This document shows, in pieces, positions 3,201-56,090 of a stretch of 64,000 bases of DNA. Both the position numbers and the translations under genes were made by a program. Under the pieces are notes generated by a model. The model saw nothing but the letters and a program-made list of their open reading frames with translations. It made no database searches and had not been told where the DNA came from. The stretch is taken from contig NW_026262712.1 in the NCBI RefSeq assembly GCF_021869535.1, forward strand, positions 48,856,001 through 48,920,000, in the 5' to 3' direction. The first letter of the stretch is position 1; each line of letters starts with the position of its first letter. This DNA comes from Mytilus californianus. Its lineage: Eukaryota.

Positions 3201-3218
3201 ATTATATTCATGATATTG

Positions 3219-4525: not shown

Positions 4526-4592
4526 ATGTTTCATTTGTTGTGTATCCTTTGCGTTACAATTGTATTGCTTTGCAAAGTTTCAGAAACTAAAG
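4526..4592 (+). CDS. Gene 1 exon 1, signal peptide
   Basis: MFHLLCILCVTIVLLCKVSETK, hydrophobic core, phase-1 donor AG|GTAGGA. Confidence 0.8.
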
Positions 4593-7500
4593 GTAGGATT
4601 TATACGTGTTTGTTTATCTTTTATTTATTCTACACTTCATGCTATTAAGTAAAGTTGATCGAAATCTTAATATTTGTATTTCGTTAATGACGAATAACAC
4701 TAAAATCACGATATTAAGAAAGCCTGTTTAAATATACTATTTGGTTAAAAAACTTATTTGATTTTACTTTACTCATATACTCTTTTTCATTATTTTTAAA
4801 AATGAATTAACTGTGACAGTCTTGCTTTGTTTTAGGAGAACCAACACGTGCATTTTTAACTAACAGTACCTTTAGTTGGTCTGATGCAATCGGCAAGTGT
4901 AGACTGATTCAAAATGAAACGACTATTCCTTATTCGCAATCCCCGACAGGACTGGGATGGACGAATATATCCGCAGAATATTTACCCTGGGTAGAGTATT
5001 TAGGTAAGAACATTCCGAGTATATGTTGTTAGATTGTTTGAAGTAGTACATGTATGTTTTAATCTGGACAGTATCATTTACTTGGGTGGTTGTTAATCGT
5101 TTTCTAAAACCATATGCCCTTACATTTAGTTACATCCGTAAATTCTTTCTCAAATTCAATGTGAATTTTGAAATGTTCTATCAGTAATCAACATCGATCA
5201 CCCTCATTTGTAAATTGTACAGAAACAAAATCTTTTAATATCCATTTTCGAAGTGTTACTAACCTATACTAAAATATTCAAGTGAATTAATGTTGCTTCA
5301 TATGTGTATTTATTGCTTATCAAATATGATAAAACCGCTAGAATGTTTTTAGTTGGACAAACGATCTCTCGTATGACCGACATTATTTAAATGACAGATT
5401 TTTTCAATATCTTTTCAATTGAACTATGTTACTGACTACCCCTATAAAGCTAACATTTGATTAGTTTGGATAGTTTGTCCTATTGGTTCAATGGTGGTTT
5501 TTTTTTCTAATTAATCTTTTTTGTATTTTTTTTGGTATTGTCCAACTGTAGTTGGGTTTTCAGCAATCTACTGTCGACTGATGATATAAAATTCTTACTT
5601 TTACAGTTTTAACTATGTACCTCTCCAAAAAAAACATGAAATGTAGGAATTGAACGTGTATATATGCGTATGTGTGTGTGTGTTCTCAGTAACGGTTGTT
5701 TTGGTTTTTTTTTTTTTTCAAAACCGGTTACTTATACTGTGAACGCACTATGTAGTGATCCGTTTTGAGTAAATACGATTCCCAAAGGTTTTTCTGTTGC
5801 CTTGAGTAGTCCGATTAATCGAAGTATGAAATTTAAATATCGGTACATTACTGTTGCCTACACTTATCGACAATGCAGATTATTACAGAAATTCAAATTT
5901 TGTTGTTGTCTCCTTGCCAGCCAGCCACCTTACAGTTCTCATTTCAATCTTATATTTGTATACATATATATTACAATATGTAATTTGGATTTGACTTTTT
6001 TATATTAAGTGATATTTAATCAATCGCGGTGGTGTTATGATTTTGTTCCCGCTGTATATGCATGATATTTGTTTAACATTTCTAAAACAAAAAATAAAAC
6101 AATGAAATGAAATGAAGAAGTATGTTTTTGCATTCTATCATTGCATGTAATTATATAATAAAACAAGATCTTCAATATAAAATATATCGACAGAATATTA
6201 GAAAGGAAAGAAGTATTCTCAACGCTATGGACAGTTCAAGATAATTGAATATCATATACATTAGGCATTAAGCTACAGTCTTTTGAACATGGATCCATTT
6301 TCAATTTCATTTGTTAAATTGAAACGTAATCTTATTGACAACCCTGGTTGAATAAATCATCACAATATACTTGTTTTCCTGAAGAAAGATTGGAAGTAAG
6401 AGGTACAGAAATCTGTTTAGTCAAATATCTATACGACCTGGTTAAATATTGTCTTAATGAGGATGTTTGTGGACTTTAAGCAACCAGCACAGAAACAGGG
6501 TATTTGAATCGTCATCTTTGTGTTAATACCAAAGGAGAGGCGTCAGTTTTGCTGTGAATTCCAAGTTTTTTTTAGTTAATCGTTCCAATTGTCTGCATAT
6601 AGGAACAATTTTGTGTGAAGCTTTGTCTTTTCGATTAATAAAATAAATGTCGTGAAGCGAAAATGAAGCATCTACTACTACTGGACTCCAGTTTTAGTGC
6701 ATCTGATTCAGGCTTGATCTATTCCGGAATAGTCCTCAATTGCATCCTCTAGTAACCTGGAGTACTATTTCAAGTTGATGGGCAGGGGAAATTGCTATTT
6801 AGGACTTAAACAATAGATGAAATAAACATCTACAGAGGTTAGTACTCATTATACGTATCACCGACAAAGTACAATAACGATAGCGTTTCATCATCGCAAA
6901 CATGCATCTCGATAGATTTAAAGTATTATATTTGAATTATCTATCAGCTGTAGTACGGTGGAACATAAGTCGTAAAAATAAAGATTAAGATAGCATTCCA
7001 CTATTAAATGTGTGATGTAAGTTCTATATACCCATCATGCCCATTAGTAATACGATGTAAAATGTCAGTCATAGAGTTGACACAAATCAAGACGTATTAT
7101 ATGTTTCTTATATTTCATTGGTGTAGTCGTCAACCACGAGCTCGATCGGAATATAATAGACTAAGGTTTAGAATGAGCATAATACTTCCCTACTTCAGTT
7201 CCATATATCATTGAATCATATTTGTATTGTTTATATACAGGGTGCTTCAAGATGTGGGAAGGAAAAGGCTTAAATGCCATACAAAAACATGTTACAGATG
7301 GTGAACAGCTTAAAGAATGTATTTTACGCTGCGAGGAGTATCAATTTCTTGGTTTGCAGGTAATAAGTAGTAGAGGAAGGTTCAAATATGTATGAGTGGA
7401 AGTTAAATCTTTATATTATTATTTTGCATATTCATAATAACTTACTTCGTTCAGAAAGAGTCACATGTTGAACTGGATTTTTAAGGGCAAAAAAACAACA

Positions 7501-10500
7501 GATAGAAAAGTGATATTGCACAGTAATAATAAAAATATAAAAAAATATATAAAAAAGCTCAATCCTTTGCTTTGCAATCGTACCAGCCAATAATTCATTT
7601 ATTCATTTCTTGTTTTGCTCTATTTTCAGTGTATTGATTGATTTTAGCCTTTGTATGTGGTCAATACATCCTCGTATAGACCTCATAAAAAGGCTACAGT
7701 TGTAAAATAATGCTTTTAATTTGTGATAATTTCACTGAAATGTAATTAAATTTTCGTATTACTTCAAAATTACGCTGATGTAGTAGGGAATTAAAAAGAG
7801 CAAGTTATAAGTACATATTTTGGCAGTAACATGACTCATGGGTGCTGTTTGATTTATAAATACAACTCCGTAAGAATACGAAATGTGAAAATTTACGATA
7901 ATCAATTATTCGGCCCTTAATAAGCTTAGGGCCGGATACAAAATTATACTGTTAGACAGTGGATATTAACATATGACAAAATCATTATAATTTATAGTAT
8001 TGTTATGTTTATAAACTTGTATTGAGCATAGACGAAAAACTGTCATTTCATGAATACTTTTCTAACATGCAAGCATGTGTATGTTAATGCTACTGATTAC
8101 ACCGCTAGACGAAATAGATAAAAAAAATGGTTTCCGCTTAGAATTTCTAAACAAATATATAACATTTAATATAAACATTTCCTGCTTATGTCTCAACTGG
8201 AACATTCTAAACGCAAGTGTTAAAAATATGATACATGTATACATTTCAGGCAAATTCATCGCAGTGTGAAGAATCTCAGCTGTTATTAACGAAACAAACG
8301 TTTTTTTTTTTTAGTTTTCAATAGAAGTGGCACTTTCGCTTTTCCGATGTTAAAAAAAGTTGTTCAGTAATAATACTTGATAATTCATTTATAACATGGA
8401 CAAAAAGTTTTTTTGATAATTTTTATGAACAGAAACAGTTCAGTATCGAAAAGCAATTGTAGATCTTGTAAACATTATGTAATATTTATCTTTATTTTTC
8501 TCAACACAACAACTCAAAGGATATGTCCGCGTCGTATCCTTATTTTAATGAGCTTAAGGGATCAACTCTCTTCAGATTATTTTCACACATTGACCTGCTG
8601 TATATTCATAGCGATACGGAAGGACCAACATTTCACCTATTAACATTGATGAACAAATGTGCATGCATTTTGTACCTCAGAGACAAGCTTGTAATCAGCG
8701 AAAAAAATTATCTTTTCTGATGTTTTTAATAATTCGTCAATGTGGAAAAATATTATATTTGTTTTATTCAGAGATCCATAATTGATGAAGCTAGCGTAAC
8801 GACAAATTAATGCGAACAGCGGTATTTTCTGTACCTACTGCAATTTTGGTTTAATGTACACTGTGATAATCACACATAGAAAAGGATAACAATTAATAAC
8901 ATATTATATATATTTGTTTATTTTCGTACATTATATTTATATTTGTAATAAATGTACCACATTTTCTGTTCTTGTAGAAATCGTTATGTATCTGCCTACG
9001 TAATTTCACACTAACAGAGGAATTTATTGAGACCCATTGTGATAGAAACGTGACAACATGTTCCGGGGATCGGTTTGCCTTTTGTGGAAAGGAAGACGGA
9101 AATGGTTACCTTTCTGTGTATAAAAAAGGTATTTCCCACATACACGTGTGTCCACATTAAATATTACAAATAAGTTGAAAAACAAATGATGGCTAGATTG
9201 TCAAGTTAGAGACAACCATCCATGACCATCCATATAATAGTTATAAGTTTAAGCTATATGTACAAGCAATTCATTTGATGCTTTCATTATCTGTTATACT
9301 CACACATTACAGCATGTTCTATGTTTTTGATATGTTATGCCCGTCCTCATTGATGGTATGTATACTTATACCATGTTTAGCATACAAAAAGGGATATTCT
9401 TTAAATTGTTTGATAGAATCAGTTCACCATGAGGTTAAAATAGAAAATATAAACATTATTAAAATGCCTTTGCAAATTGTAAACCATTGAGGCTTGAACG
9501 CATCTCCGCGAAATAATCATTTTTCAGCCTGATAAAAACACTAAAAACATCATATATTTTCTCAAAAACTAAAATAAGAACATTGTGCCGCGAAAGAAGT
9601 AAAGCAAATTATCTATAACAAAGATTGTGCAAGAAAACGATTTAATTTGGTGTGAATACAAATAAAATAGCACATTTGAAATGAAGTCCTCGTTTTCTTG
9701 TCATACAAAATATTGCTTTCAAATCTTATATTTACAACCGAAGTAAATGATGGATAAACATTATATATAAAATTACAATAAACAAACAACCGTATTGAAT
9801 TTCAATTAAATTTGTGACAAAAGTGCATTGCATATTTTTTCCAACAAACAAACGCACGTTCTATAAAACTAAGAAGGCTTCGCTATGTTAATTTTATACT
9901 AAGACATAAAGATCTTACTTATAGGAGTATTTCCTTGTTTAGATATCTCAGTTTTCATGTTTTGTAACATTTCCCCTAGTTAAGCCATTCACTTTCAAAG
10001 TAAACAGAGCTTGGCGCATTTTACGGCACCATGATTAAGTGCAGAAACTTCAAGGAAGGAATTACAGAAGTAAATGTAAGAGCAATTCGGAAAATTTGTT
10101 CTAAAAGTTACCGATTCATTTATCTAGTCCCAAAGGAGTGCCAGACAAATCAAGGTCAAAAGTCACGGTTTATGTCTTATTTCAATATGACTAAACGGCG
10201 ATGTTAGTAATACATCATGAGACAACATCCAAAACGACAAGATAACAAGCGTGATCTAGGTGTCACCAGGTTAGATTTTATCTGTTCTTATATATGCTAC
10301 AAATCATATAGTGAGACTTATCAGTGATTTTTAACGATGGTTTGCCATCCTAATTGATTTCTCTGGTGTTTGTATATTGATTAGCAATGTTAACACTTTC
10401 ATGCAGTTTTAGTGCCGTAGAACTGTGATCCGTTATAATTGAAGTGGAAACTCGTTGAAATCGGGAATATAAAGTTTAGCTCCACCATAGCTTATTTGTT

Positions 10501-13500
10501 CATATAATCGTAAGCTTGTTTTATTTGTATGTTCTTAAGTAAATGTTGATGATACATATGGTAACATTGGAAACTGCTTGTTTGTAAACACAAGTAATTC
10601 AAACGATTTCAAAGCCAAGGAATGCTCAACAAAATTCCATCACATATGTTTGAATTGTAAGTATATGTATACTGTAAGGCATCAGCTACTAGATATAATG
10701 TAAACATTTCTATGTCGATTTTGTGACTGTAGTTTACTATACATGTATATATGAGTAGAAAATATGATACACATCTATAGAACTCACGGCAGTAAAAAAT
10801 CTATACTTTCATCAGCAACCGTAAAACAAGTTGTTGGTTATAATATCAATCGGGTAAATGAAGTGTAACACGTGATAAAACGAGACAGTTTCTACACGTA
10901 AACAGTTTGTGAGTAACTCTTGAGTAAACGAAAATCATAACTAATAATTAGTAGGTCGACATAAATGTGGTAGACCTCACTTCGAGACCAACAAAGGAAC
11001 GAAATAGAAGTAGTAAGTCTTCCGCGAAACCAACAAACATGACCCATATAAAAATAGAAGACCTAACCAAAAGTGACTCATTTAATGCATAAAATACAAA
11101 ATTACCTCATTTTGAGATCTTACCACACCTACTACATTTCTTAAGGTTAATCTTGCTGGTTCAACGTCTATGAGGGACTAAAAAGGACGAAATTGTTTCC
11201 AAAATTTAATTTTACTGCTATAAATATATTTGTGTGTGACTACCTTAACATGCGGTGGGAAAGAGAGTGAGAGAAATGCTAATGAAATATGATACACAGA
11301 ATATAGATGATTATACTATTTACAAACATCATCCCGGAGCACCCCTGTGATTCCAGTATGATATGTACTTAACTACGTTTCCAACAACCCTATACAAATC
11401 AAGTATATAATACTGGTTACATTCTTCAATGAAGGTAAACGTAGACTAGTGAGATGAGAATTACTTTGTAACCGGAACGTTATATTAAAAAACAAGAAAA
11501 AAGCCAAGAAATTACAAGTTATTTATCATATATAACTGTTGCAATATATTTTGGCTTATCTATATTTAGTTTAGAAAGTTACAATTCCTTTACCGTTCAA
11601 AATTCGACAATTACCTTTGTGGCTTAGCATATTTTCCTAGTGATTTTATGGCACATGTTAAAGGAAAGATTAATTTGAAATCCATGACTGTAACATTATT
11701 TACCTTCAAAATCGAATTACTAGCATTACAGAAACGGGAAATGAAAAGTGGAGTTAAAAATATTCCCACTTGAAAATCAATTTCGTTTTGTCTAGACACA
11801 ACATGTACCCTATTTGTTACTGCACCTTATAGTTTGTCTGAATACCAGACAATTTCAATGTTATATATTAAGACTTTAAAAGAGAGACATAATAAAGATG
11901 TTCGAGGGATAATACTGTGAAAAATAATAATTTTAAAATGTAAACTGTTTCAGCTAATGAGACTGGATTCAATCTGCAAAGTACAACTAAGTCTAATTGG
12001 AAAGATGCCTTTGGTTACTGCAAAAACCTGGCAAGCTATAATTTAGTTAGAGGCAAAATAAATACAATAAACGTTTTAGAATCATTTTGGCTTTCTAATA
12101 CCAGACGATGGACAAGAAAAAGAGGTGAGTATATGTATATAAACTCATCATAGATACTAGGAACACAATTGTGTACGCCAGACGCGCAGTCTTTTGTATG
12201 GCAGTATTAAATTCTGTTTGATATCGCATATTGTCCTACCGAGCGTTTAAAAATACCATTGTTAGACCATTATCTGTTTCTATCGTTTGTTGTACTTTTT
12301 CCCCTTTGTTACCATATTAAAATTTAACAAGTTTCTAGATCTGTTCGTTGTAATTGTTTGGTTGTTCTTCCGATCAAGTCCACGTGGTTCTATAGGATAT
12401 CTGGCAATAAACTTTTAGTGCAATAAAAGCTAGTCCTACTATACCACCAGAAAGAGTTTACGGGAAGACAGTCTTCATATGTTGTAAATGAACATCCAAT
12501 TTGGATTTTTAACACGATATAATTCCATGTATTCAAACGTTTTAAATATCTAAAATTTAATTGTCGACAATGGAGAAATGTTTCCGTAGCGATTGTGTAG
12601 TTGATATTATATATCGTCCGGTTGAAGCTATATTTCAGGTGACCATTAACGGTCACTTAATTGATCTGCAAGAAAACTGTAACTTCCTTGTCATATTGAT
12701 AAAATGTCGAAACCGGAGAACTTCGAAGACTTAATGATGTCAAAATTAAATTTTCACAAAAGAAAACCAGAGACAAAGCCAACAACATTTGGATCAACCA
12801 GGATTGATTCATAGTATGCATAGATAGTGATGCAAGAGTCCTACATGGAACTGTAATATAATAAAATACATTTCAAAAATATAAGATAGATTTTTTGTAT
12901 CCATCTTAAATGAAAAATGAATGTCATTGCAACATATAACCTGTCGATATAACACGTAACCAGCTTTTTCTCGTAAATTAAGGCGACAGTATGTCAAACC
13001 AATGTTCAAATCCGGTAAATCGATTTAAAAGAGACAAATCAAGGTAACAAACAAAAACTGAGGAAGCCGCATGAACTCCAAAAGGAGCGAGACCGGTTGC
13101 ATCCACAGGGTAAGCATCTCCTGCTATGCATGTAACCCGTCATTAAAAAATCACATTCAATCAAAAATGTGCCAATAGGGAATACGGCACAATTGATAAA
13201 AATACAGATAAGACCATCACTCCGTTATTTAAAGATTTAAGAACTCTAAAACATGTCGCATGTGAGTAATTCGTATATGACAACTTCAGCAAAAAGGAGT
13301 TTGATAGTCCTGTCAAGGTAAATACCCAAACAGAATTTTAGAGAGTTTGGTTTTCTTTATGTGTGTGTGTGTTCAATTGATAGTAGGCATGACTGATGAT
13401 ATGATAGTCTTTTGTAAACCGTAACCGTTTCAAAATATTATACCAATGTGCAGTTAAAGATAACCGCCACACACAATAAAATGGATACTGAGCAAATGAC

Positions 13501-16500
13501 ATGTTTATAGGATATACACTTATTAAAGATCATTCTTTAAACCAGTTCAACATAATTGAATATTATAGAACAAATATATAATGATCCTTCCTAAACTTTG
13601 TTTTTTATTTTAAATTTCAACCAAACTTTGACTAAACGTGAAATAAACTTTACGAAAATTATTATAATATTCTTAACGTTTATCGATATGAAATTAAGAA
13701 GATTTGATATAACTGCCAATGAGACAACTATCCACCAGAGACCATAAGACGTCGATATAAGCAACCATAAGTCACAGTACGGCATTCATCAATGTGCAAT
13801 ATCCATACCGTGTAGTAGAGCTTTCTTACATTTTGACGAAAGGTACGAACGAAGGTAAAGGGAGCATGCATTTAATTTACATTCCCACGATAACACTTGG
13901 AAGTTGGATTCTACATTTTATCCGATAAAACGGTCTTCTATTCTTAATAACATGTATCTTTTTAAATTTCAGCATATCGCAGATAAACACGAATTTAATA
14001 TCTGTATTAAAATAAAGAAAAATCGTTTAAAATAGACTTACGTCCGATACGTTGATTATGTTATCCACAATTACACATATTTGCACGGGAATTGTTCAAG
14101 CATGCTTTTTTTAAATGTTAAAACAGAGACTTAAAATAAGACTCTTGTTTAAACCATTAACATCTTAATGAAATTCTTGCAGTATGATACTCTAAATTTA
14201 ATGACAGAATTCGTAATTATTTTTATTTTTTAACGAGTATGTCATCATCAAATTGTCAACGGGGATCATCAAGATTTGCCAGACAAAGAAACTACAATGT
14301 ATTGAAAAATGTACTTTAAAAAACCTGGTAGAAGGAAACATAAAAAAGGATGAAGTTTTTCCAATAATAAAAAGGTTAAATGATAAACAAAAAATATTGC
14401 GACACTTGCGATTATAATAAGCAAATGTTTAACGGAATAAAACCTATACCCCCCCCCCCCCCCCCACCCCCCCCCCCTCTGAAAATTAAATGATCGTTTG
14501 TATTCCCCAAATGATTTTTAGTCTGTTTAAAACTAGTTATATTTTCAGTTAATGCACGACTTATTCTATCTCATTCTTTTAAACGCCGTTAATTAGTTTA
14601 AAATCATTTATTACTTGTGGACCAAGCAGTGATGCACTTAACATTTACAGAAGATGTTAACACGAGCGAACATGTGAAATCCCATGCCAATTCCAGGGGA
14701 ATAATTAACACACACATACACCCTCACAAACAGCTTTGATTTAGACAATCATAGGATAAATATTTACGAGATGACAGCAAAACAGTCCAAACTGTATAAC
14801 AAACGTTTGGAGGTCCAAAAACCAAAAAGACAAACAATCAACAAATTGTACTGAAAAACCCGGAAAACTTAGGTGTCGCAGAAGTTTAAAACGTATCTGT
14901 CTCTGGCATAGTTGTGCATATAATAGACCAAGGCTAGGAGTATGTCTGCCGAGTGGATACAGATCGGGTGCTCCCACTCCTAAATCCGCCATCGAGCTCT
15001 AGTTACAGATCAAATAACTATGGATCTTGTTTTGTTCATTTACATACACAATTGAACAACTGGATGAGTAAAAGACCCCCAGTATATATTTTGAGTGTCA
15101 TTTTTTTCGATTTTACTATTTTGGGGGTTTCAAAATTTACAATTTAGAAAGATTATTTTTTTATTTTTATTTTTTTTTGGGGGGTGTAGTTGAGCACACC
15201 TTTTTTTACGGGATATTTTTCTTCTTCTGACGAGTCTGTGTTTAGCAAATTTTGTTAAGTTATCTCCTTCACCCTGTTTTTTTTATATATATTTTTACAT
15301 CGTACGTTCCTATGTTGCACGACTATCTTTTTGACACTTGTCGTAGCATGCAGTGTTTTAATCCTTGATTGGCAAATATTGAGGAGAAACGCAAATATTG
15401 AGGAGAAACGCAAACTTAGTCCCATGATCGCCTTGATTCAGATTACATAAATATGTTTAATTTTAAGAATAATTCAAAATAAAGGATCCCTCCACCATGT
15501 CTTACGTATGATTCGTCAAGCGTACGTATTTTTCGTCAAATTGTAAGAAAGCTCTAGTAAGTATTTAAGGACCCTCTAGTCCATTTTTATTCGGATTTTA
15601 CCTTTTCATCTTAATTTTTTTTTTTTAAATAATTGACTATATCTAGAAAACTCTTGTATAGTTTTAAATTCTTCGAGTCTATCCTCTCGTTTACACCATA
15701 TACTTATTATTGATGCAATATAATTCCACAACTATATTTGATTAGAATTCTTAGATGCAGCAGAATATCCTGAATTTTGTGTTGCTGCCAGAATAAGACA
15801 AAATGGTGATGTTAAAAGATCAATCCGTAGATGTAGAAAACGTCTACCCGGGCTTTGTATTGAAGTTGGAAAGACGGTTTCTGATATACCTTCAAAAATG
15901 TCTTCTACACTGTCACCAGTTAATACATTTTCTCGAAGATTGGATAAAACTTCTTCATTTCTACGAAGTAATACACTTCAAGGTATAACTATATCTACGT
16001 ACTCCGCTTCACAAAAAAGTACATTTTTATCTCAACTTGGATCAACATCTCCAGCTCTGAAGGAAACTACCGGTAGATCCAAAATGGTACCAAAAACAAC
16101 TTCTCCTTCTCGGGATATTCAGGAAAATACATTTCCAGTTCTTGTAGAATCTCCTTCTTCAGATGTACCGGGTAAAGATGAAATAGATGTTGTTTCAGGT
16201 AACGACCAACTAGCTATATATACGCTATATTTCTTTTAAGTGTTTCACTTTATATAATTCTTATAAGATTTGCATATTAGAGAATACGTTGATATGATTG
16301 GTTGAGAGGACTTCCGGTAGTTGTTCTTGTAAACAAGATGGCGGCGATAATAAAACAATCCGGATTGACGTTAACAAAATTTATTCAAAGTTCAATCTGC
16401 GTTAATAGTTAAATTAAATAGTAAACACAAACCATTCGTTTCAATGATAATAAGATTTTTTGTAGTTTATTTTTATCAGATTGCAAATTTCATGGAGTAC

Positions 16501-19500
16501 ATATTTTTGCGTTAACCAACAAATATATTCATGCGCCAGGCCTATTCAATGACACAAATATACAATTAACGTGTGATAGAGGTTACGAGTGTGAAAAAAA
16601 AAATTCTTTATCTCCAATTTTAAAGAATTATAAGGATTGAACGCCTTTTAAAAGGAATTTATTGGTGTATAAACTGTACCAAGTCACTCACAAACATATC
16701 ATAAAAGTCCTTCGGACTTTTATTTGTTTGTGAGTGAATTGGTCGAGTTTATACACCAATAAATTCCTTTAAAAAGGCGTTTAATCCTATAATAGCCCTT
16801 ACCTTCTAGATTTTTTAATCATAACTACAAGCAAAGACATGAATTATCAGTTTGTTTCGATAAAAACATATATAATACTATGAGTGAATAATTTTGTAAG
16901 CAATAACAATAATTAATGATTGACTTGTGTGATGTATTATAGTCAAACGGTTTAGATTGGTAGAATTGAGTTTTATAGAAAATTATGGCTTGAAATCTAG
17001 TAAAAATATGTCCTGCCTTTGTAATATTTAAAGAACTTGTAAATAAAAACCGTTTAAATGAATTATTTTAAAAATGATCAAAGAGTTATTTGAAATAAAG
17101 TACTTTTTTTAACAGAAATAGTCATCATAGCAATAGTAGCTGCAACAATCCTCATAGTCATCGTTATATCAGTAACGGTTGTCTTCTGTAAAAGGTAAGT
17201 CATCGTTATATGAGAAACGAATGTATTTTGTAAAAGATAAGTCATCGTTATATCAGTAACGATTGTCTTGTGTAAAAGGTAAGTCATCGTTATATTAGTA
17301 ACGATTGTCTTCTGTAAAAGATAAGTCATCGTTATATTAGAAACGGTTGTCTTCTTTAAAAGGTAAATCATCGTAATATTAGTAACGATTGTCTTTTGTA
17401 AAAGATAAGTCTTCGTTATATTAGAAACGATTGTCTTCTGTAAAAGGTAAGTCGTCTTTATATTAGACCTTTTCAATAACTCTCGACACCGACTAATGAC
17501 ATCTACAGTTTACAGGTAAAATGAAGGGGTCGTCTCAAAACTAAAAATCATTCATGAATAGTATTACTTTTACACCTTCGATTTATCGTTTTACACTATT
17601 TGGACGAAAGAACATATTTCTAACAAATAAGAACTATTATATCTCTCTCTTTTGTTTAGCATTCTTATTACATGTAGTTATACGACATTTTACGTTGAAT
17701 TTATTAAACCTTCAAGTAAATAATTACTGCAATCAATTCACATAATCTGCCTTTTTTTCTTCTTAAATTTCATGATTATGTGAGTATTTTGATAAGCGAG
17801 TCTGTCAACGCAGATATTTCCACATGCCAATTGCGATTAATTCGCTTTTGTAATGCTATTTATGAAATTTGCTGAAGGAACATTGTAACAGGACTACCGT
17901 CCGTCCGCTCGAGTTGTGTTTCTCAACCGATCTTCACGTCACTTGTTGTACACATTCAATTTTGGGAGGGGTAAAAGCCTATTTGTTTAAAGGTCAAAGG
18001 AAAAGGCCACATCGATAATTTAGTTACGCGAGACTACTCCGCTTTAAGATACCATGTTAAAATTGAGATGTTTCCTTAATGAACTGGAAACATTAACGGC
18101 ACCTTTTTTTTCTGCGCCACATGCGCATTTTTACAATTAATATCTCTTCAGTGATGCGTATGGTATTTATATCCCAACAGAGCTTGTTGTCATTGCAGTG
18201 TCTTTTTGACAGCGCCGAACTGATTGACCGTTATAGGTTGTCCGTGTCCCGAAAGACGTGAACATACCTTTTCCCCTGTCGTAGATTCCTTTCATTTCCT
18301 TTCCCTGTTCCTGAAAAATGACCTTCGTGTGTCTTGCAAGAAGCGAAGAACTGCTTACCCTTCCCCTTTTCAGGACATAGCTTTGGTTTTCTACTCTTTA
18401 CTGTTTTTTTTCATGCATAAAGGTTTTTTAAATTTCATCACTGACCATACATAGGGGAGATTTAAGATCCCAATTATACTAGTGAAACCCGGCCGCATGT
18501 TTTATGCGCCTGAAACAATTCCTAAACAAGTTGGTCATTGCAATTGGTAAGTTTTTGTCACAATAGAATATTTAGTTTACAATTTGATATTTTGACATTA
18601 TGCTTCGCTCTCATATTTGTTTCCTTTTTATTCGATCAAAGATAGTAACTTTGTTTCCTTTTTTTTGGAAATGGGTTGAGATTCGGGTCTTTAACCAAAA
18701 TGCAGACTATGCGGTAACTGAATGTCTGTTTTATATGTTGCATTGTGTGGTTTTTTTCCTACTGCAGAAGTCATAAAAATGACAAGAGAACGAGAAAAAA
18801 AAGCTTACGATTTGAATCTAAATCTGAATCAGAAGAGACACCAAGGGCCTTTAAAAATCTTGGTATCTATTTTGTTATGAGTACCACTGAGACATTGGAA
18901 GCCAAAATTAACAGACATTGTAGAAACATGTACCGCCCTAGTCAACAGATATAAAACATTGATTAATTAAACATCTACTACAAAAATACAGGTATTTTTT
19001 TTTTTTTTTTTTTCATTTTTCAACTCGACGTCTAAAAGAAATGAAACATTGAAGTCCTTCCTTTTCTTCATAGTCAATTCACAAATAAATTTCGTTTTGA
19101 TAAACAAATACCTAATAAACAAAATAAGGTACGGCACACAACAATTGCTTATCTACACGTCATGTTGGATAGTGGTCTCATTGGCAATCAAAATAATCAT
19201 ATGCGATCAATTATAATTTTTTTCAATTTTATTTATGAGACGACCCCTCATATCTCACCTGTCGTAGTCGTTCTCAACTGTAGGTGTAGACAATTGTTGA
19301 AAAGGTCTATTAGTAACGATTGTCTTTTGTAAAAGATAAGTCTTCGTTATATTAGAAACGATTGTCTTCTGTAAAATGTATAGTAATTTTACTGTATCAT
19401 GTTTATATATATACAAAATGTATGTACTAGACGTGATAGGAATGTCAATACGATTTTGACGCTGATGTTAACTACCAATACCACTACACGCTATAGTGGG

Positions 19501-36507: not shown

Positions 36508-36538
<31 letters not shown>

Positions 36539-42500: not shown

Positions 42501-45500
42501 TCTCATGTTCAGTAGTTGTCGTTTGTTGATGTGGTTTATAAGTGTTTCTCGTTTCTCGTTTTTTATATAGATTAGACCGTTGGTTTTCCCGTTTGAATGG
42601 TTTTACACTAGTAATTTTTTGGGGCCCTTTATAGCTTACTGTTTGGTGTGAGCCAGGGCTCCGTGTTGAAGACCGTACTGTGACCTATAATGGTTTACTT
42701 TTATAAATTTTGACTTGGATGGAGGGTTGTCTCATTGGCACTCATACCACATCTTCTTATATCTATGAACAGTTTTAACTTGCAGTATTATTTTATTGAT
42801 TTTTTACTGTTAGTTTTTTCTAGAAATGACATACGAGCTGGGAATTGTTTATCAGCGGTTAGAAATGATATTGGTGGAAAGGGGGTAAACTCTTACGAGG
42901 CAAACCCTTGTGATCAATATTTCCATCTAGTGTGTCAAACAGGTAGGTCTAAGTTTCTTTATCCATGCACTGCTTTTGATTTTTAAGGGTATGTGTTTTT
43001 CTTTCGCCAGTTTTACGCCAAAAGGTCCTCTTTCTACGGCTTCGTTTATCAGTGTGTACAACAAAAAGAAAGACTTGGGTACGTTTGGGTGGGGTGAAAG
43101 AGTATTGTTCACTAGCTAAAACTTAAGTTCATTTACTAAATGAGCTGCTTTAGTTGGTTGCATCGGCAAACATACTATGACTTTATCAAGAAAGTTTAGG
43201 ACTGTGTGATATTCTTTCTTTTCAATCAGTTCGTTACGGTATATTGATTTTACATTTCTGAGCATATATGTTTTATATCATGTAAAAAAAACAGAATTTC
43301 TGAGCATATTTTTTTTTTTTTTTTAATTGTAAATCGAATTATTTATTTCAAACTATTAGTTCTAATGTAGAGTTTTTTTTTCTCATTTTCAGGTTTTCTT
43401 TGTTGCAAATTTGTATTTGTCATGCGCATTTTCGCATCTTTCCTTTCGTCCATTCAATGTCTGTTCTTCGTTGGCTTGTCTTACTGTTTTATGTTACGGA
43501 CAGCCTAGGTTGGGGTGATAAAATATTGTAAACATTTCAACTTAAAAACAAAATATTTAAAGTAACATTTTAATTTGAAATAATTGTGCTCACTTCAGAG
43601 TCACTTTTTTTTCTTTAATTGCATGCAACAAGAATCAATAATTTCTAGAATTGAGATATCGAAGATAATATTGCCAGAAACTTATATAATAAGAATACAA
43701 TTCTGTAAGTTTACTTATCGAAAAAAAAAGATGGGGCAGGTTGAGTACGCCAATAATCTTTTATTTAATCCCATGCTTTACATGGTAGTTATGGTTGAAA
43801 ACCGTGAACAATGTTGGCCTGTGGACGTCTTTTTTAATTTATTGAAATTGGGTTGCTGTCTCGCTGATTTGTACCACGACATTGCATTTTATCTAAAAGA
43901 GAATAAATAATGGTAAAAATAATCAGCATTTGTAAACACTTGCTAGTATATAGCTACCTCCTGAGAAATGTTATATGAAAATTGTAGCAATCAATGTAAT
44001 CTTCTTCGAAATATTTATACAGGAAAAATTTCAAATAATTTGCACAAATGGTCGGAATCTTTTCTTCATTGCCTTAATGGGACACTGGCACGATATTCAG
44101 TGGTTTCAAACCAGCCGATAGAGCTAAAGACAAATACATATTATTGGCTGGCTAATATAAGAAGACCAAGTTTTCACTTTTACTCAGGTAAGTTAACATG
44201 CTCCGTATTGAAGGCCGTACTTTGACCTATAATTGTTAACTTTTTATACATTGTGACTTGGATGGAGAGCTGTCTCATTGGCACTCATACCTTATCTTCT
44301 TATTTATATTGTATGAGTTCTATTTTTCGCTGATAATGATGGTATGCATTTCGGTGGTTGTGTGTCATATTAGCTCTCCTGGCTGAAAAGGCTTTGTGAG
44401 CTATTGTCATCTCGTATTGTCCATCCGTAGGCGTGCAGACGCTTTTACATTCTCCATTTCTTCTCTGACACAATTTATCAAACGTAAGAACGTAACGCAT
44501 GTATATTAAACAGCGGGTGTTTTGTACTTGTGTAACATAAATTACCGATCGTGAAAAAAAACACAGCTGCATGAGGCATTTTAATTTAATCTGAATGGAA
44601 ATTTTATAAAAGATTCTGTCTCAGCATAAAAGGTGAAATATTTTGAAACTTTTAAGGTGATAGATCATTTGCATTTAATGTTAATCGGATATCGAACAAT
44701 TTGGGCTTTGCATATTGTTGAAGGCCGACGATTACATTTAGTTATTTTAAGCCACGTCCTTTGGTCTCTGATAGATAGTCTTCAAATTGACAACCATGCT
44801 ACATCTCCACACATTTTAATGGCAGCATTGTTGCAAATAGTTCACATTGAAACTAAATAAAAGATTTTTTTCCCCTAATATGAGATGAAAACCATAGCCA
44901 CCAGAAGTATATTTTGATTCTGATTGGCCTTTTAAAAACACCTATAAAATGTTAACATTGGTACATTCGTATATTCATTATTTGGTGCAAATCATGCTAG
45001 GTAGTTTGAAAACCAGTGGCGTGAATGGATTGTATGGCAAAAGGACGAATTTCGGCGCAAACGGATATCTTCCAAACAATCACGGAATATCAGTTTTACT
45101 AAATTTCGTCATGGTTTATTGCCATGGTAGCTCGACAACAGTGAAAGCTGTTTTAAATCTGTACACCTTTTACCTTAGTTTTGTATCGAAATTTAAGATC
45201 ATCTTAGGTAACTTTCAAATTGGAACTAAATTAGGGACCAACTATGTGCCTTATTATTCCGTCTCCTTTACATTTCGGTGTCATTATTTTCACTAATTAT
45301 CTATGATCTATACATGTATCATAAAGTCTCAGATATTATAGGTGTTTGTCCCCCCACAAATTCTTATTGAAACTCCCCCCCCCCCCCCTCAATTTTTTTC
45401 ACCTCCCCCTTTCCCCCATTCCAAAAAAAAATTCTTTCCCTCAAGATATGGTCAGAATCTCAATTCAAATTTCTAATGGAGTTTGCAACCATAATTACCC

Positions 45501-51500: not shown

Positions 51501-54500
51501 TTTATTTCAATGAGAGAAAAAAACAGGAAGTTATACACTTATCAGTTTGCTGTAACAGTTTCGAACTTTTTATAGATGGGAGTAATAGAAGTAGCTATCG
51601 CCAGGCAATATGTTGACAACAGACAGCAAAATGTTATAAATATGATTTTGTCGTTACCAACAGAAGAAAGTTGAATTTAGATCTGATATGAAATAATTGT
51701 TATTTAAGAATTGAATGCTTCTTTTTGTAAATTTATTGAGGTGTAAAAGCGTTGACCGAAGTACATTTTGTATGAAGCGCAGAGGCGCTTCATTCTAAAA
51801 AATGTGCGCACGGTCAACGCTTTAACAACCCTATAAAATTACTAAAAGAAGCATTCAAAATTTATAATTACATTTTTTGCTAGGATCATGAAAACACAAT
51901 TTCTATCAAGTTTTTCTTTTATTTACCTATGCACTTTATAGTGGAAGCTCGTGTCATTATGAATTTTACATTTCATTTTGAATTTAAGGTTAATTTCAGA
52001 ATGACGCGAGATTGCTGTTAGCCAATCAAAATAACGTATTATAATGAAACATACATGTAATGTAATTATTCATGTATGAAATTTACTTTACTTTTTTCCG
52101 TTTTAAAGACCCTGAACCAAAACCGAAATATTGTGGTTCTGCAAAGATCAGTAGCAATGGAAAACTGATGAGATCTGTTGAAAAATGCGACAAACGTTTA
52201 CCAGCACTTTGTTTGGATCGACCTGAATTTGTTTTAAATCCTGATAAAGGTAAACTTATTATTAATTATCATATTCTGGAAAAGCTACAATAAAACAGCA
52301 AACCAATAACAAATGACAGTTAACATCTTTCTATATCCCAATACGCATTTTCGTTAAAGCCGAACAGTGACTGTCACAAAATCCTGAAACATCTTCTTTT
52401 ATTCATATCGAAATAACAATTCAGTAAAGGTTATCAAATAACGTTTTCAATATTGATATGTAAGCGGGGAGAGCACAATGTTAAAATAGTGGTTGTGTCA
52501 GTGTACAATACAGACACCTGCTTTAGTACCTTTCAGTTTTGTTATACTAAGTAATTTTATTACACTTTTATGAGATACATGTACATCTAATAAACATAAG
52601 CACAAAATGCTTATCGTTCTATAATAGAGGGCGCTTAACAAGTTTTGTTTAACGTAATACATATTTTTAACACTTTACTGTTTCTATTTTAGTAACCTTT
52701 ATTCTATTTTACTATAATGATCGGTCGGTCAACTCGTTTATACTTTCATGAACATACACTCAACAATGTAACATATCACTGAATTAAATAAAATTAATGT
52801 TTTATTCAGTATATATTATACAAATTAAACCACTGGTAGATACAGTTAACATAAATGCCTGCTTTTATTGCAAATCTTTAGACAACCCTTTTTTTAAGTT
52901 AATCACCCGTCATAACCATTTATTTAAGGTGTATGTATCAATTAATGTCTAGACATGTACTATATGTATCTTGCACATGATAACTCACTGTTTCCTGCAT
53001 GTTCCAACACTTGATACTATAAATTTTGCAATTTTAAGCTTTTATGGATTATTCTTTTGAAGTATTTCTTAAATCATACATTTGGTGAGGTTCGTGTTGC
53101 TCAGTCTTTGGTTTTCTATGTTGTTTTTGTCTCGCTTTGAAGGAGTCAAAAGCGAGACATAGGTATGCTGTTTCCGGCGCCGGCGGCGTCAACAATGTAT
53201 TAGATTGTGATTAGGTCTAGTTCATGGTGAACCATTAGTGGTAGGTCAATGATATGTGGTATGCAATTGTATTATCATTGGCACATCTCAATACCATGGA
53301 GATTATTTGGCCCCGACCCCTCAGTCAAGGTCTATTGACTTTGAAACTTTTCATAGTTTACATGTATTAGTTTGTGATTAGGTCAATTTATGGGGAACCA
53401 CTAGTGGTAGGTCAATGATATTTGGTATGCAGTTGTATAAGTATTGGCATATCTCATTTCCATGGAGATTATTTGGCTCCGCCCCTTTAGTCATGGTCTA
53501 TAGACTTTGAAAATTTTGCTAAGTTAACATGTATTAGTTTGTGATTAAGTCAGTCCAAGGGGAACCATTAGTGTTAGGCCAATGTTAATTGGTGTTCAGT
53601 TGTATAAGCATTAGCACATCTCATTTCCATGGAGAATATTTGGCCCCGCCCCCTCAGTCATGGTTTACTTTGAAACTTTTGCTTAGTTTACATGTATTAG
53701 TTTGTGATTAGATCAGTTTAAGATGAACTGCTAATGTTAAGTCAATGATATTTGGTATGCAAATTTATTGGCATTTGCAAGTATCGTTTCCATGGAGATT
53801 ATATAGCCCCACCCCTGATCATGGTTCATTGACTTTGAAACTTTTACATAGTTTACAAGTTAATGTTTGTGTTTAGGTTTGTTTAAAGGGAACGACTTAT
53901 AATAAGTCAATGGTATTTGGTATGCAGTTGTATTAGCATTGGCACATCTCATTCCATGGAGATTATTTAGCCATGTACCTTCAGTCATGATTCGTCGACT
54001 TTGAATATTTGCATAACTTACATGTTAAAGTATTGCTATTTTAATTTCAACATTTGTATTATCAAAATTACAAAAAGGCGAGACATATCTCTGTGATAAC
54101 AGTTTATGTGTACTGTTGTTTGTCTGTTGGTCTTTTTCTTTTTTAGCCATGACGTTGTCAGTTTATTTTCGACGTATGAGTTTGAATGGCCCTTTGGTAT
54201 CTTTCGCCTCTCTTTCAATTCACTCTGAGTAGTAGAGAGGTATGGTTACAGAGGGCAAACGATTTTGAAATATGAACTCCAGCTATAAATGTCAGGCATA
54301 TTCAATATGTCAGAATGCTAGATTTTTCATTTGTTGATACGAGGCTTATATCTTTTTCTATTACAATGGCTCAGTGTGAAATATTTTTTAATGTTAAAAC
54401 CCTCTCGTATTAAAAAGTACAAAAATTGACAAAAACAAAAATCAACAATTTAAAAGACCATTTTAACAGATAATTCAACATGATGAATCCTATTACACAT

Positions 54501-56090
54501 AGTGAATAGTGCGAAAGAACAGGTTAATATCGCTCGTAATAATATAAACGTGGTTAAGCTCGGTTTTGCCTGGTTTGAAAATGTGTTTCTAGTAGTACCA
54601 ACCCTTACAACAATGTGTTATTGTATACCTTCCCGACAGTTCATAAAATTACATACATTTGCATATTGTTCAAAACTTTCCACAAAAAAATAGTTAATAT
54701 TTTACATGTTAACTAGGGATTTATATTTACAGATAATACTGGTTTGAATGTTAGTATTACAGTAGTAGTTTTGTTAGTAGTTTCTGTCGTACTAGCTGTG
54801 TTTATAGTTGTAATTGTTTGGCGTGTGAGGCAAGTATACATAAGTTACAGTCGATTTCGGCTTATAAACAGATGTTTTGCTTTTTATGGTACAATATAAT
54901 TTACATAATAAAAGAATCTGTAGTGATCATGATCGTATACCCCTCGCCACGCATACACATGACATAGAAGTCCACCACTAGAAAAATTGCCCTTCGTTTA
55001 AAATGTTTATGATTGTCGAAAAGTTGACCTCTCGAAATAATGGTCCCTAGTTTTAGATTTTTTGGGATTCTTGAATTCCTCCGAGATATTTATGGAATAA
55101 AAAACTTCAGACGTAATTTTAAAATAAACCGATTAAAATTCAAACATTATTCCGTTGTCAATAATTTATGTTTTTGATAGTAGGTGCCTCTCTAGAAAAA
55201 AATGGTACATTTTTAAGGTTTTCTCCGACTACATTGTAATTATCTCATCCGTGGATTTGAAAATGTGGAAATCTTCATTTCACATGCTTAATTATGAAAA
55301 GATTCTGATGAGGGAACGACCATTTGATATTCGGGTGGGGTGTCAATTTTCTTAGGATTGACTATTTGTTGGTACACAGGCTTGATTTTATCCCCGGCTT
55401 CATTTTGTTTTGCAGACTATTCATTTTAATCCTGTCTTGGACAAAATCATTTATTTCCACTTCTAACCAGGTCAGGTTATTCATTTTTAGAATTATCCTC
55501 CCCCTTTCCAAAAATTAAATGGTTGTACCCTAAGAAATCCCGAAAATGTACGAAAAATAAAAACATAAAAATAGTTTCTCTTGTTGAATTAATTATTTTT
55601 TTCCCTTTAGATGTCAGTAGCTATGATGTAACTTTTTTCGTTCTTTTCCTTTTATTATAGATTGAAAAAGAAACAGTTAAGTCTAGATCAGCCTCAAAAT
55701 ACTTCTGAAGATGGCCACGTGTATACTGAAATCAACGAAACTGCCGAATGTTCGAATCAACCATCCAAAAGAGTTAATGGACAGTTGACTTATGATCACC
55801 TCATGCATTCCCAAAAGGTGACCAGTAATCCATCCGGAAATATGTATGACACCACAACTGATGTAACTGCGAGATATTACGACCAGTCAACAGTAAAATC
55901 TAGTTATGATAAAATTAATATCTTCAAAAACGTGCATGGAAACTTCCAAAATCAACCTCCGAATGAATATGACTCTGTGCGACTTATTGAAAAGTGTGAC
56001 GAAGATAACTATCACCATCTAGATAGAAATAAAGGGAATGTAGCCACAAACGATGCTAATGATTACATTGAGACCAGTTTTTTTAACTGA
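36010..56090 (+). CDS. Gene 2: paralogous 9-exon receptor, about 483 aa, with an apparent 1-nt frameshift in exon 3 (pseudogene allele, sequencing error or rescue by a cryptic acceptor)
   Basis: Exons 36010-36070, 37598-37765, 38556-38667, 41310-41457, 42814-42942, 44023-44187, 52109-52249, 54733-54829, 55661-56090. The sum is 1451 nt, one short of 484 codons. Phases and Cys pattern are the same as gene 1. Confidence 0.82.
37598..37765 (+). CDS. Gene 2 exon 2
   Basis: GEVANAFLTRNNYTWTEAKNNC...QLWIDARVTYSPWIEYL; 21 of 57 residues identical to gene 1 exon 2, ungapped. Confidence 0.9.
38556..38667 (+). CDS. Gene 2 exon 3, WSC first part, frameshifted near its 5' end
   Basis: GC/FRVTDEIVGTHQYVTSGQQIEECLHICTDYDFLGLQ; 112 nt where 113 are needed; GGTGTTCAGA versus expected GGTGTTTCAGA. 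Confidence 0.85.
39920..40035 (+). mobile_element. SINE 3' half
   Basis: GAAGGCCGGTGGTTC...CGGCTTCCTCC...AATTGACCGCCACGAAATAGC...GCGTTAAAACATCAA. Confidence 0.7.
40115..40290 (+). mobile_element. Family A tail
   Basis: GTTTGAATGGTTTTACACTAGT...GTTGAAGGCCGTACTTTGACC...CCACATCTTCTTATATCTA. Confidence 0.8.
40485..41080 (-). mobile_element. Near full-length family A element (about 600 bp)
   Basis: Colinear and highly similar to 57725-58345. Confidence 0.85.
41310..41457 (+). CDS. Gene 2 exon 4, WSC second part
   Basis: QGRCACLKGRPPNSGDSDPKCDSKGCEKDDNGLCVDTNDIGMYAVYSKP; five Cys positioned as in gene 1 exon 4. Confidence 0.87.
41684..41820. repeat. Foldback (inverted) duplication followed by a direct repeat
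   Basis: Arms 41684-41732 and 41738-41785 around a CTGTC loop, then CACGTCCTTTG.TTCTGGTGGATGGCTGTCCCA repeated. Confidence 0.9.
42490..42765 (+). mobile_element. Family A 3' part, ending about 50 bp before gene 2 exon 5
   Basis: GTCAGGAATCTCATGTTCAGTAGTTGTCG...CCACATCTTCTTATATCTA. Confidence 0.8.
42814..42942 (+). CDS. Gene 2 exon 5, C-half of CTLD1
   Basis: VFSRNDIRAGNCLSAVRND...YEANPCDQYFHLVCQT; donor G|GTAGGT. Confidence 0.85.
44023..44187 (+). CDS. Gene 2 exon 6, N-half of CTLD2
   Basis: GKISNNLHKWSESFLHCLNG...TYYWLANIRRPSFHFYS; TACAG acceptor, G|GTAAGT donor. Confidence 0.87.
44195..44297 (+). mobile_element. Family A tail directly after gene 2 exon 6
   Basis: GCTCCGTATTGAAGGCCGTACTTTGACC...TCATTGGCACTCATACC. 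Confidence 0.75.
45250..46160. mobile_element. Satellite-bearing HINE-like element (about 170-bp units, one GGGCCC site)
   Basis: Repeated CCCCTTTT..G.CC.TAATT...CCATAAC...TCAATCC.AACC units at about 45770 and 45925; ATACCAATATACGACCGCAAAAATTTGGCAGT end. Confidence 0.55.
47011..47192. repeat. About 180-bp imperfect palindrome
   Basis: Arms AGATATTTCATA...TTTCGTAAATTATACCATAG...TGAAACCCC / complement; apex GAC-GAA-GTC. Confidence 0.9.
48495..48855. mobile_element. HINE-like element with a repeated AACTTGATCTG unit
   Basis: Unit repeated at about 48520 and 48635 (related sequence at 46865); terminal AGTCCCCTTC...GTAGGGGACT hairpin. Confidence 0.6.
51700..52070. mobile_element. Hairpin-ended repeat element just upstream of gene 2 exon 7
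   Basis: Palindrome 51700-51868 with apex GAAGCGC-AGAG-GCGCTTC; distal CCAATCAAAATAACGTATT motif. Confidence 0.6.
52109..52249 (+). CDS. Gene 2 exon 7, C-half of CTLD2 with a very short stalk
   Basis: DPEPKPKYCGSAKISSNGKLMRSVEKCDKRLPALCLDRPEFVLNPDK; matches gene 1 RSIRRCRKRLPGLC. Confidence 0.88.
53125..54107. mobile_element. HINE-like element with five about 165-bp tandem satellite units, inserted in a Penelope-like tail
   Basis: Terminal hairpin TGTCTCGCTTT...AAAAGCGAGACA, matching subterminal AAGGCGAGACA at the far end, GGCGCCGGCGGCG microsatellite; unit anchors at 53230, 53396, 53563, 53726, 53891. Confidence 0.8.
54733..54829 (+). CDS. Gene 2 exon 8, transmembrane helix (GC donor)
   Basis: DNTGLNVSITVVVLLVVSVVLAVFIVVIVWRVR; TTTACAG acceptor; donor AG|GCAAGT in phase 2 joins exon 9 in frame. 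Confidence 0.85.
55311..55531. mobile_element. 221-bp MITE in gene 2 intron 8
   Basis: TIR AGGGAACGACCATTT / AAATGGTTGTACCCT. Confidence 0.75.
55661..56090 (+). CDS. Gene 2 exon 9, cytoplasmic tail with Tyr motifs
   Basis: ORF 55662-56090: HVYTEI, LTYDHL, NMYDTT, RYYDQS, SSYDKI, NEYDSV, DNYHHL, NDYIET; long pyrimidine tract and TAG acceptor. Confidence 0.9.

Follow-up and report, generated by a model that had tools for sequence, protein, structure and literature searches.

Two neighboring genes on the + strand of a 64,000-nucleotide stretch of Mytilus californianus DNA (contig NW_026262712.1, positions 48,856,001 to 48,920,000; hereafter the window, with positions counted from its first letter) probably belong to a tandem same-strand array that encodes a Mytilus-restricted family of type I membrane glycoproteins, in which a head with WSC and C-type lectin-like domain (CTLD)-like units is combined with a cytoplasmic tail carrying tyrosine motifs. 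The predicted protein plan would consist of a signal peptide, a 16-cysteine head, an optional Ser/Thr-rich stalk, one transmembrane helix, and a disordered tail containing between four and nine tyrosine motifs. We refer to these genes as gene A (4526-23198) and gene B (36010-56090).

The GC content is 30-36% across the window and no long open reading frame (ORF) is present, as is usual for an animal genome. Exon pairs were found by translating the regions near 3-24.5 kb and 35-57 kb on the + strand and comparing the stop-free pieces; splice sites were picked by eye and then assembled by script into models of the two genes. The stop-free pieces gave five collinear pairs (gene A at approximately 4.5-23 kb and gene B at approximately 36-56 kb):

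Exon 2 pair: 4817-5029 vs 37534-37797, + strand, 36.8% identity over 57 aa (E 1.5e-12)
Exon 3 pair: 7183-7392 vs 38527-38778, + strand, 50% identity over 30 aa
Exon 6 pair: 11944-12150 vs 43965-44222, + strand, 33% identity over 39 aa
Exon 7 pair: 15742-16236 vs 52066-52290, + strand, 41% identity over 41 aa
Terminal ORF (tail) pair of genes A and B: + strand, 32% identity over 87 aa

The assembled proteins share 30.5% identity over 311 aa (E 8e-44). Much of what a first-pass annotation had described from the letters of the sequence was borne out: there are two same-strand multi-exon genes, which run from the ATG of A (4526) to the stop of B (56090); the identity in exon 2, given there as about 37%, was measured as 36.8% over 57 aa; and both products have the features of type I membrane proteins, each with a signal peptide and one transmembrane helix, with seven (A) and five (B) N-x-S/T sequons for N-glycosylation in the ectodomain and tyrosine-rich tails containing four (A) and nine (B) motifs.

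Several relatives serve as references below, namely, P0013 (M. californianus LOC127706777), P0019 (LOC127706781), P0033 (LOC127706791), and P0005 (M. trossulus LOC134684696); L001 denotes the M. californianus reference locus upstream of P0019. Based on its splice sites and these relatives, gene A is predicted to be an intact family member whose tail has been shortened by a frameshift also present in the reference allele. It has nine exons and exclusively GT-AG introns (phases 1,1,0,1,1,1,1,2), and its product is 540 aa in length:

Exon 1: 4526-4592, + strand, ATG and signal peptide; phase-1 donor GTAGGA
Exon 2: 4836-5003, + strand, N-terminal half of the first lectin-like unit (strand, W..A...C helix, GWTN strand) and the first WSC residues WVEYLG; phase 1
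Exon 3: 7241-7359, + strand, WSC part 1 (CF...EC...C...FLGLQ); ends in phase 0
Exon 4: 8978-9128, + strand, WSC part 2 (CxC, C, C, C ... SVYKK); phase 1
Exon 5: 10540-10656, + strand, C-terminal half of the first lectin-like unit (GNC..., C, ...HIC); phase 1
Exon 6: 11954-12124, + strand, N-terminal half of the second compact lectin-like unit (NWKDAF..C ... FWLSNTRRW); phase 1
Exon 7: 15746-16198, + strand, C-terminal half of the second lectin-like unit (EFCVAA...C...LPGLC) and Ser/Thr-rich stalk of approximately 110 aa; phase 1
Exon 8: 17116-17194, + strand, transmembrane helix; phase-2 donor AG|GTAAGT; junctions match P0033
Exon 9: 22901-23198, + strand, cytoplasmic tail with AVYGEA, DTYDHI, SNYDTM, and LNYDHV; stop at 23196-23198

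The encoded protein thus starts with a signal peptide and a cysteine-rich head, continues through the stalk of approximately 110 aa and a transmembrane helix, and ends in a 103-aa tail that carries four tyrosine motifs. The borders of the exons match those of segments in the RefSeq models of relatives, and the identity is 54-56% to P0005 and P0013 in exon 2 and 49% to P0013 over 559 aa (E 3e-145). Residues 316-540 match P0033 without gaps at 97.8% identity, which confirms the junctions of exons 7, 8, and 9. Exon 7 has an in-frame alternative acceptor 9 nt downstream. The tail is approximately 25 residues shorter than in relatives through a frameshift, and an out-of-frame remnant of the last tail motif of the relatives follows at 23180-23262 (+ strand; frame +1 reads ..DSATDYSQVD.. 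vs ..DGASNYSHVEV.. in the relatives). Since the reference allele P0033 ends in the same way, this frameshift is real. Reading through the exon-7 donor (16199-16240) gives an in-frame extension with a stop after 13 codons, and the models of the relatives P0005 and P0010 end in '..SGND..', as such a read-through would produce. In exon 8 begins a minisatellite (17156-17467, + strand; 42 bp in 7.4 copies with 87% matches), which copies the 3' end of the exon together with its splice donor and forms a series of donor-like sites.

Gene B follows the same exon plan:

Exon 1: 36010-36070, + strand, ATG and signal peptide; phase-1 donor GTAAGT
Exon 2: 37598-37765, + strand, homologue of exon 2 of A (36.8% identity); phase 1
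Exon 3: 38556-38667, + strand, the A-like acceptor at 38556 reads G-C-S-E-stop; alternative acceptor at 38573
Exon 4: 41310-41461, + strand, WSC part 2; exon 5 does not follow in frame from the A-like phase-1 donor after 41457 but does from the weak GTCAAT donor after 41461
Exon 5: 42824-42942, + strand, one base short of the A-like frame at the first codon (AAA run)
Exon 6: 44023-44187, + strand, N-terminal half of the second lectin-like unit
Exon 7: 52109-52249, + strand, C-terminal half of the second lectin-like unit; no Ser/Thr stalk
Exon 8: 54733-54829, + strand, transmembrane helix; GC donor AG|GCAAGT, phase 2
Exon 9: 55661-56090, + strand, 143-aa tail, whose nine tyrosines include those of HVYTEI, LTYDHL, SSYDKI, and NEYDSV; stop at 56088-56090

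The identical intron phases proposed for the pair fail for B as assembled, which runs into stops after 38556 and is out of frame at 42824. Homopolymers at the beginning of exon 3 and of exon 5 are each 1 nt short, which leads to these stops when A-like splice sites are used; at exon 3, the DNA has TT where in-frame reading requires TTT. An open frame of 475 aa requires the acceptor located 17 nt downstream (38573) and the weak GTCAAT donor located 4 nt downstream (after 41461). The former keeps the frame at the cost of the GCF motif and the first WSC cysteine, and the single cysteine missing from B is this one, located exactly at the first frame break. Intron 8 is of the GC-AG type. A phase-0 junction between exons 8 and 9 was considered and rejected: the consensus GC donor AG|GCAAGT after 54829 restores the A-like phase 2, and once it is recognized, an apparent third phase discordance vanishes. 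Gene B is accordingly predicted to be a deeply diverged paralogue with the plan of A that may represent a null or decaying allele, contain assembly errors, or be rescued by nearby splice sites.

Both genes have relatives only within Mytilus in our searches. An exhaustive HMMER search of 1.84 billion representatives with exon 7 of gene A gave 12 matches with Mytilus proteins on top, and word-seeded searches, started from one relative and continued with profiles, gave 10, 10, and 32 matches. All of the word-seeded matches came from M. californianus, M. coruscus, M. edulis, M. galloprovincialis, M. trossulus, or Logan contigs. No homologue outside Mytilus was found in these searches, and the limited sensitivity of word seeding makes this range a lower bound. 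A conserved housekeeping gene was rejected as an explanation, since all homologues found in these searches are Mytilus proteins. Three lineages that are either supported or long stand out in the maximum-likelihood tree: A falls in a clade with support 100/99, another clade has 98/99, one M. edulis protein stands alone, and the longest branch is that of B. Gene B has no close orthologue among the matches, with at most 28% identity. Gene A has its exon plan, its 16 cysteines, and its tail motifs in common with its Mytilus relatives.

The M. californianus reference holds at least five same-strand family members within approximately 250 kb. On the reference chromosome JAKFGE010000006.1, the array includes, in this order and on one strand, the P0013 gene (48.82-48.85 Mb), LOC127706791 (corresponding to A), a gene for a 326-aa product (apparently corresponding to B), the P0019 gene (49.025-49.055 Mb), and a gene for a 495-aa WSC protein. 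The spacing differs between the two sequences: 8.3 kb separates the end of LOC127706791 from the start of the B-like gene in the reference, and in the window the distance from the stop of A to the ATG of B is 12.8 kb. A third family gene begins in the window itself:

Third family gene, exon 1: 58890-58968, + strand, signal peptide with phase-1 GTAAGT donor; allele or orthologue of P0019/LOC127706781, with its later exons beyond the window

Given this exon and the reference array, the two genes are part of a larger array. The idea of an old tandem duplication in a clustered, lineage-specific family is supported; the genes are adjacent and on the same strand as had been described, but they are not an isolated pair. 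The family has been seen before: RefSeq and UniProt already list members under the names 'uncharacterized protein' and 'WSC domain-containing protein'. The reference model of A (LOC127706791) begins only at an internal Met of exon 7 and leaves the lectin/WSC half unannotated, and B appears as a 326-aa model lacking the transmembrane helix and the tail. The family is real and already public but mis-annotated, and with A truncated to its 3' half and B deprived of its transmembrane and tail exons, any survey built on current proteomes undercounts and misdescribes it.

The WSC domain is the solid part of the head, as supported by Pfam matches in relatives and by fold matches to Wsc1 and Kremen. 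The Pfam and AlphaFold2 (AF2) results rest on paralogues that stand in for the spliced A and B proteins. Pfam PF01822 matches six of 16 relatives above the gathering score; in P0020:80-195, the match scores 39.6 bits (cut-off 27.8; E 6.1e-10) and covers profile positions 1-81 of 82. The ten single-exon translations of A and B gave no Pfam match, the pieces being too short. Gene A has 45-53% identity to the PF01822-matching relatives across the WSC region and retains all eight WSC cysteines, including YLGCF (the Y-x-G-C-[FY] strand); gene B retains seven. For the P0013 ectodomain, a first AF2 run with a 23-row alignment had a mean local confidence score (pLDDT) of 55 and was usable for the WSC part alone; with a 34-row alignment, the model of P0013:22-305 reached a pLDDT of 90.5 and a predicted template modeling (pTM) score of 0.87. 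A Foldseek search with this model found Wsc1 (7pz2; probability 1.00, TM-score 0.60) and Kremen entries (probability 0.94-1.00), one of which, 5fwv, aligned with probability 1.00 and a root-mean-square deviation of 3.0 over 102 columns. The structural comparison thus upheld the WSC fold and yielded no credible CTLD.

Across 13 family ectodomains, 16 cysteine columns (4+8+4) are invariant or nearly so. Gene A has all 16 and gene B has 15, such that the cysteine spacing described as common to both genes holds except for one position in B. The 4+4 cysteines of the two lectin-like units are invariant in the 13 ectodomains, each unit carrying its four in canonical order, and the patterns W..A...C, GW(T)/FWL(S), xC(L/V)A, and ..C....(I/L)C occur in both units. 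In the proposed arrangement, the eight-cysteine WSC domain (exons 3-4) would lie between two sequence halves (exons 2 and 5) with a four-cysteine CTLD pattern, and a second compact four-cysteine CTLD-like unit (exons 6-7), split by a phase-1 intron, would follow. The WSC domain would occupy the long-loop position of the first unit; in the second, only approximately 12 residues lie between the WLSNTRRW strand and the next cysteine strand. Automatic names in UniProt call P0011 and P0028 'C-type lectin domain-containing'. Regarding the Ca2+/sugar site (EPN/QPD plus WND), no EPN, QPD, or WND motif was present in the family alignments.

Several results weigh against assigning these units to the CTLD fold. 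Pfam Lectin_C (PF00059) had no match up to an E-value of 10 in the whole proteins or in the isolated second unit, a PDB sequence-profile search with the ectodomain and the second unit found no CTLD, and Foldseek with the P0013 model returned one CTLD row with a probability of 0.02. Moreover, the confident model is that of a 49%-identical paralogue and not of A or B. For the heads originally described as WSC plus CTLD, the WSC part is secure and the CTLD part is weaker than was stated; the lectin-like units are at most a compact, non-canonical CTLD and not a classical C-type lectin.

Based on the sequence and the P0013 model, we lean toward a WSC domain nested within a CTLD-like unit. In the model, the first unit has a strand, a helix, and a strand before the WSC domain and three strands after it, and the second unit consists of a strand, two helices, and five strands. 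When the WSC domain was deleted, the first unit aligned collinearly with the second in hhalign over 72 columns (P 0.03; controls against WSC gave P 0.19 and 0.31), with four of four cysteines matched along with the W..A...C helix and the GW/FW strand, and exons 2|5 and 6|7 are divided at the same structural position by phase-1 introns. Exons 3 and 4 together form a symmetric 270-nt cassette (phase 1-1), which is compatible with a pair of WSC exons having entered an intron already present in the CTLD. The likeliest origin would be a CTLD duplication, followed by entry of the WSC exon pair into the intron where the long loop of the CTLD would emerge. This picture faces difficulties of its own. 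The first three positions of the WSC profile (YLG) are at the end of exon 2, outside the cassette. In addition, each CTLD alignment starts at residues 1-5 of the P0013 model and ends at 282-284, with only 72-89 residues aligned. The N-terminal strand thus falls on the unit that also contains the C-terminal strands, so that the lectin-like repeats may be intertwined or segment-swapped, or the first may not be an independent CTLD. A different reading, which we consider a serious possibility although the less probable one, is that only the C-terminal unit is a true CTLD-like domain and that the segments flanking WSC are a family-specific extension or are swapped into that unit, in which case the nested picture would be wrong or too simple. 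These alignment spans favor it, as do the lack of the second helix from the first unit in the model, the hhalign P of only 0.03 between the units, and the absence of a Pfam match for P0028:26-150, a natural model without most of the WSC domain. It accounts less well for the collinear cysteines and motifs, the strand order on both sides of the WSC domain, and the equivalent exon borders and phases, and the aligned ranges can take in stray fragments, as illustrated by a Kremen row that spans 53-240.

Whether this haplotype can still produce a protein from gene B is a separate matter. It is quite possible, with chances a little short of even, that B is a pseudogene or null allele, in which case both 1-nt losses would be real, no functional full-length protein would be made from this haplotype, and its long branch would reflect relaxed constraint. 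Two aspects of the gene structure point in this direction and count against B as a working family member: stops arise with A-like splice sites, such that B stays open only with sites that are non-homologous to those of A, and the rescuing sites are weak, namely, the GTCAAT donor and an acceptor without a pyrimidine tract of its own. RNA was checked for gene B only, over 37200-43100 in four runs. In the same-species run, from which 1.55 Gb was read (approximately 6% of the run; tissue unknown), the depth was zero at exons 2 and 4 and no exon-exon joint was found on exons 2-5; the contig runs had low, intron-inclusive depth with no exon joints listed. Read coverage over this interval fell almost wholly on abundant intronic repeats, and a run search with the last exon of B found only small word shares (≤0.15). 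These data give no support for expression and are not proof of its absence. The branch of B is also the longest in the tree (2.13 vs a median of 0.3), and no close orthologue was found among the hits in five other Mytilus proteomes. An extremely abundant short interspersed repeat occurs in introns 3 and 4 of B (40155-40351 and 42519-42715) and also at 3002-3307 and 44226-44383; its word depth reaches approximately 6e4 in all four RNA/contig runs and swamps read mapping of the locus.

The sequence of gene B otherwise looks maintained. All nine exon frames are open over approximately 1.43 kb, where approximately 7.6% of random codons would be stops at the 32% GC of this genome, and 15 of the 16 cysteines are retained. 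The reference locus L001 holds exons 7, 8, and 9 of B at 95.3% identity to the window without an indel in 657 nt; the changes are 12 synonymous and 19 nonsynonymous (pS 0.087, pN 0.037, dN/dS 0.40), and intron 8 has 86% identity and nine gaps. Both breaks are single-base changes in short homopolymers, which are also typical of long-read assembly errors. Furthermore, the reference 326-aa product, which has a 'WSC (faint)' label, ends 45 nt past exon 7 (L001:3406-3450) and leaves intact transmembrane and tail exons unannotated; this model appears to correspond to exons 1-7 of B with read-through of the exon-7 donor. In our reading, gene B would have been under purifying selection until recently, and the homopolymer breaks would represent either a haplotype-specific null state or assembly errors. 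The read-through endings of P0005, P0010, and the reference B model suggest soluble or secreted isoforms that lack the transmembrane helix and the tail.

The window and the reference differ by 3-14% in alignable DNA. For example, 54706-56627 has 86-97% identity to L001:6199-8139, and the synonymous divergence in exons 7-9 of B is 0.087. Divergence of this depth is unusual between alleles and suggests that the haplotypes of this array are highly divergent.

Five tyrosines are conserved across the family in otherwise variable tails, in the contexts VVYAxV, DTYDH[MIL], SNYDTM, NxYDHV, and NYSHV. Gene A keeps three of these motifs well and has lost the last through its frameshift; the tail tyrosines of B, including LTYDHL and SSYDKI, are conserved in the reference haplotype. 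Matches to the immunoreceptor tyrosine-based inhibitory motif (ITIM) include LNYDHV in A, LTYDHL and SSYDKI in B, and VVYAQV and SNYSHV in relatives, and YxxM motifs are found as YDTM and YDHM. No canonical spacing of an immunoreceptor tyrosine-based activation motif was seen in the family tails, and their Pfam similarities to the SIT, GAPT, and DAP10 adaptors were all below threshold. The motifs fit ITIM-like and YxxM ligands of SH2 domains and YxxPhi sorting signals equally. By analogy, the WSC/CTLD-like head may bind a glycan or other surface ligand without a canonical Ca2+ site, and clustering of the receptors could then expose the tail tyrosines as SH2 docking sites ([VLS]xYxx[VIL], YxxM) and/or YxxPhi endocytic signals. 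Our confidence in the details of such a receptor, in which clustering would engage tyrosine-based docking and/or uptake, is low, because every functional statement derives from motifs and analogy.

Two other functional readings were weighed against this one. The tail tyrosines might serve mainly as YxxPhi sorting signals, which would make these proteins endocytic or scavenger receptors or recycling mucosal lectins and not phosphotyrosine-signaling receptors. We give this perhaps one chance in three in informal terms, as most of the motifs fit YxxPhi (YDHI, YDHV, YTEI, YDHL, YDKI, and YDSV), no kinase or adaptor domain is present, and the adaptor similarities noted above fell short of their thresholds. 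However, the five conserved tyrosines are in acidic contexts typical of kinase substrates (DDTYDH, ESNYDTM), the YxxM and [VLS]xYxx[VIL] motifs fit SH2 ligands, and multiple spaced motifs exceed what sorting needs; the two roles can also coexist. The other reading, that these are surface stress or adhesion sensors similar to fungal Wsc1, with the WSC head on a glycosylated Ser/Thr spring stalk followed by a transmembrane helix and a short signaling tail, seems improbable. Its appeal is that no structure matches the WSC part better than the mechanosensor domain of Wsc1 and that A and most clade-I relatives have more than 100 aa of Ser/Thr-rich stalk between head and membrane. Yet gene B and the clade-II relatives have little or no stalk, animals have no cell wall, and the lectin-like units and multi-tyrosine tails are without counterpart in Wsc1. 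A ligand-binding receptor with tyrosine-based docking and/or uptake remains the reading that we prefer.

Several known systems can be compared with the family. Vertebrate natural killer (NK)-cell and myeloid C-type lectin-like receptors (CLEC12A, CLEC-2, NKG2D, CD94, Ly49, and CD72) resemble its predicted plan in having non-Ca2+ CTLDs, gene clusters, and ITIM-like or YxxL/I tails. These receptors are type II proteins with a single C-terminal CTLD that has a full long-loop region and with no WSC domain, whereas the mussel proteins are type I, and no sequence similarity is detectable between the two groups. Kremen1/2 (Kringle-WSC-CUB) are likewise type I membrane proteins with a WSC domain, but they lack lectin-like units and a multi-tyrosine tail, and their WSC domain is a bead on a string and not located between halves of another domain. 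Fungal Wsc1-type cell-wall integrity sensors combine a WSC head, a Ser/Thr-rich stalk, a single transmembrane helix, and a short cytoplasmic tail; they differ in having neither lectin-like units nor a tyrosine-motif tail and in their cellular context, and gene B has no stalk. Polycystin-1 and sea-urchin REJ-type proteins (mentioned in PMC10140915) have both WSC and C-type lectin domains in the ectodomain. Unlike the mussel family, which is Mytilus-restricted among the matches, they are very large, multi-pass, and conserved across metazoans, with the WSC domain and the CTLD in sequence. A 2023 survey of bivalve C-type lectins listed WSC among the extra domains of bivalve-specific, uncharacterized CTL-domain proteins (CTL+WSC in bivalves; PMC10140915), and a 2015 transcriptome paper lists a 'WSC domain-containing protein 2' that is unrelated to this family. 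In the literature on WSC with Mytilus or bivalve lectins, we found no study of the family.

The family pairs what would be two glycan-binding folds in an unusual nested arrangement with a tail that looks suited to tyrosine-based signaling or uptake. The haplotypes of its array diverge strongly, with 86-97% DNA identity between window and reference, and one allele may be null. Adaptive immunity is absent from bivalves, which depend on receptor families expanded within individual lineages; for most of these families, little beyond counts of domains is available. Should microbial or algal glycans prove to be ligands of the head, this array would provide a tractable case of recognition modules arising by exon insertion into a lectin loop. 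A broader scenario, which we regard as speculative and on balance unlikely in its entirety, is that exon shuffling inserted the WSC module where the ligand-binding long loop of a CTLD emerges and so created a domain-within-domain head; the resulting Mytilus-specific tandem array, with fast-diverging type I receptors whose SH2-docking tyrosines are conserved, would be an independent molluscan analogue of the lectin receptors of the vertebrate NK gene complex, with null alleles such as B as presence/absence-type diversity.

Downstream of gene B, an ORF at 56556-56831 (+ strand) is located within a repeat that is found once at this place in the window and twice in the reference locus (L001:1865-2528 and L001:8127-9642). 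This repeat looks like a common mollusc mobile-element fragment.

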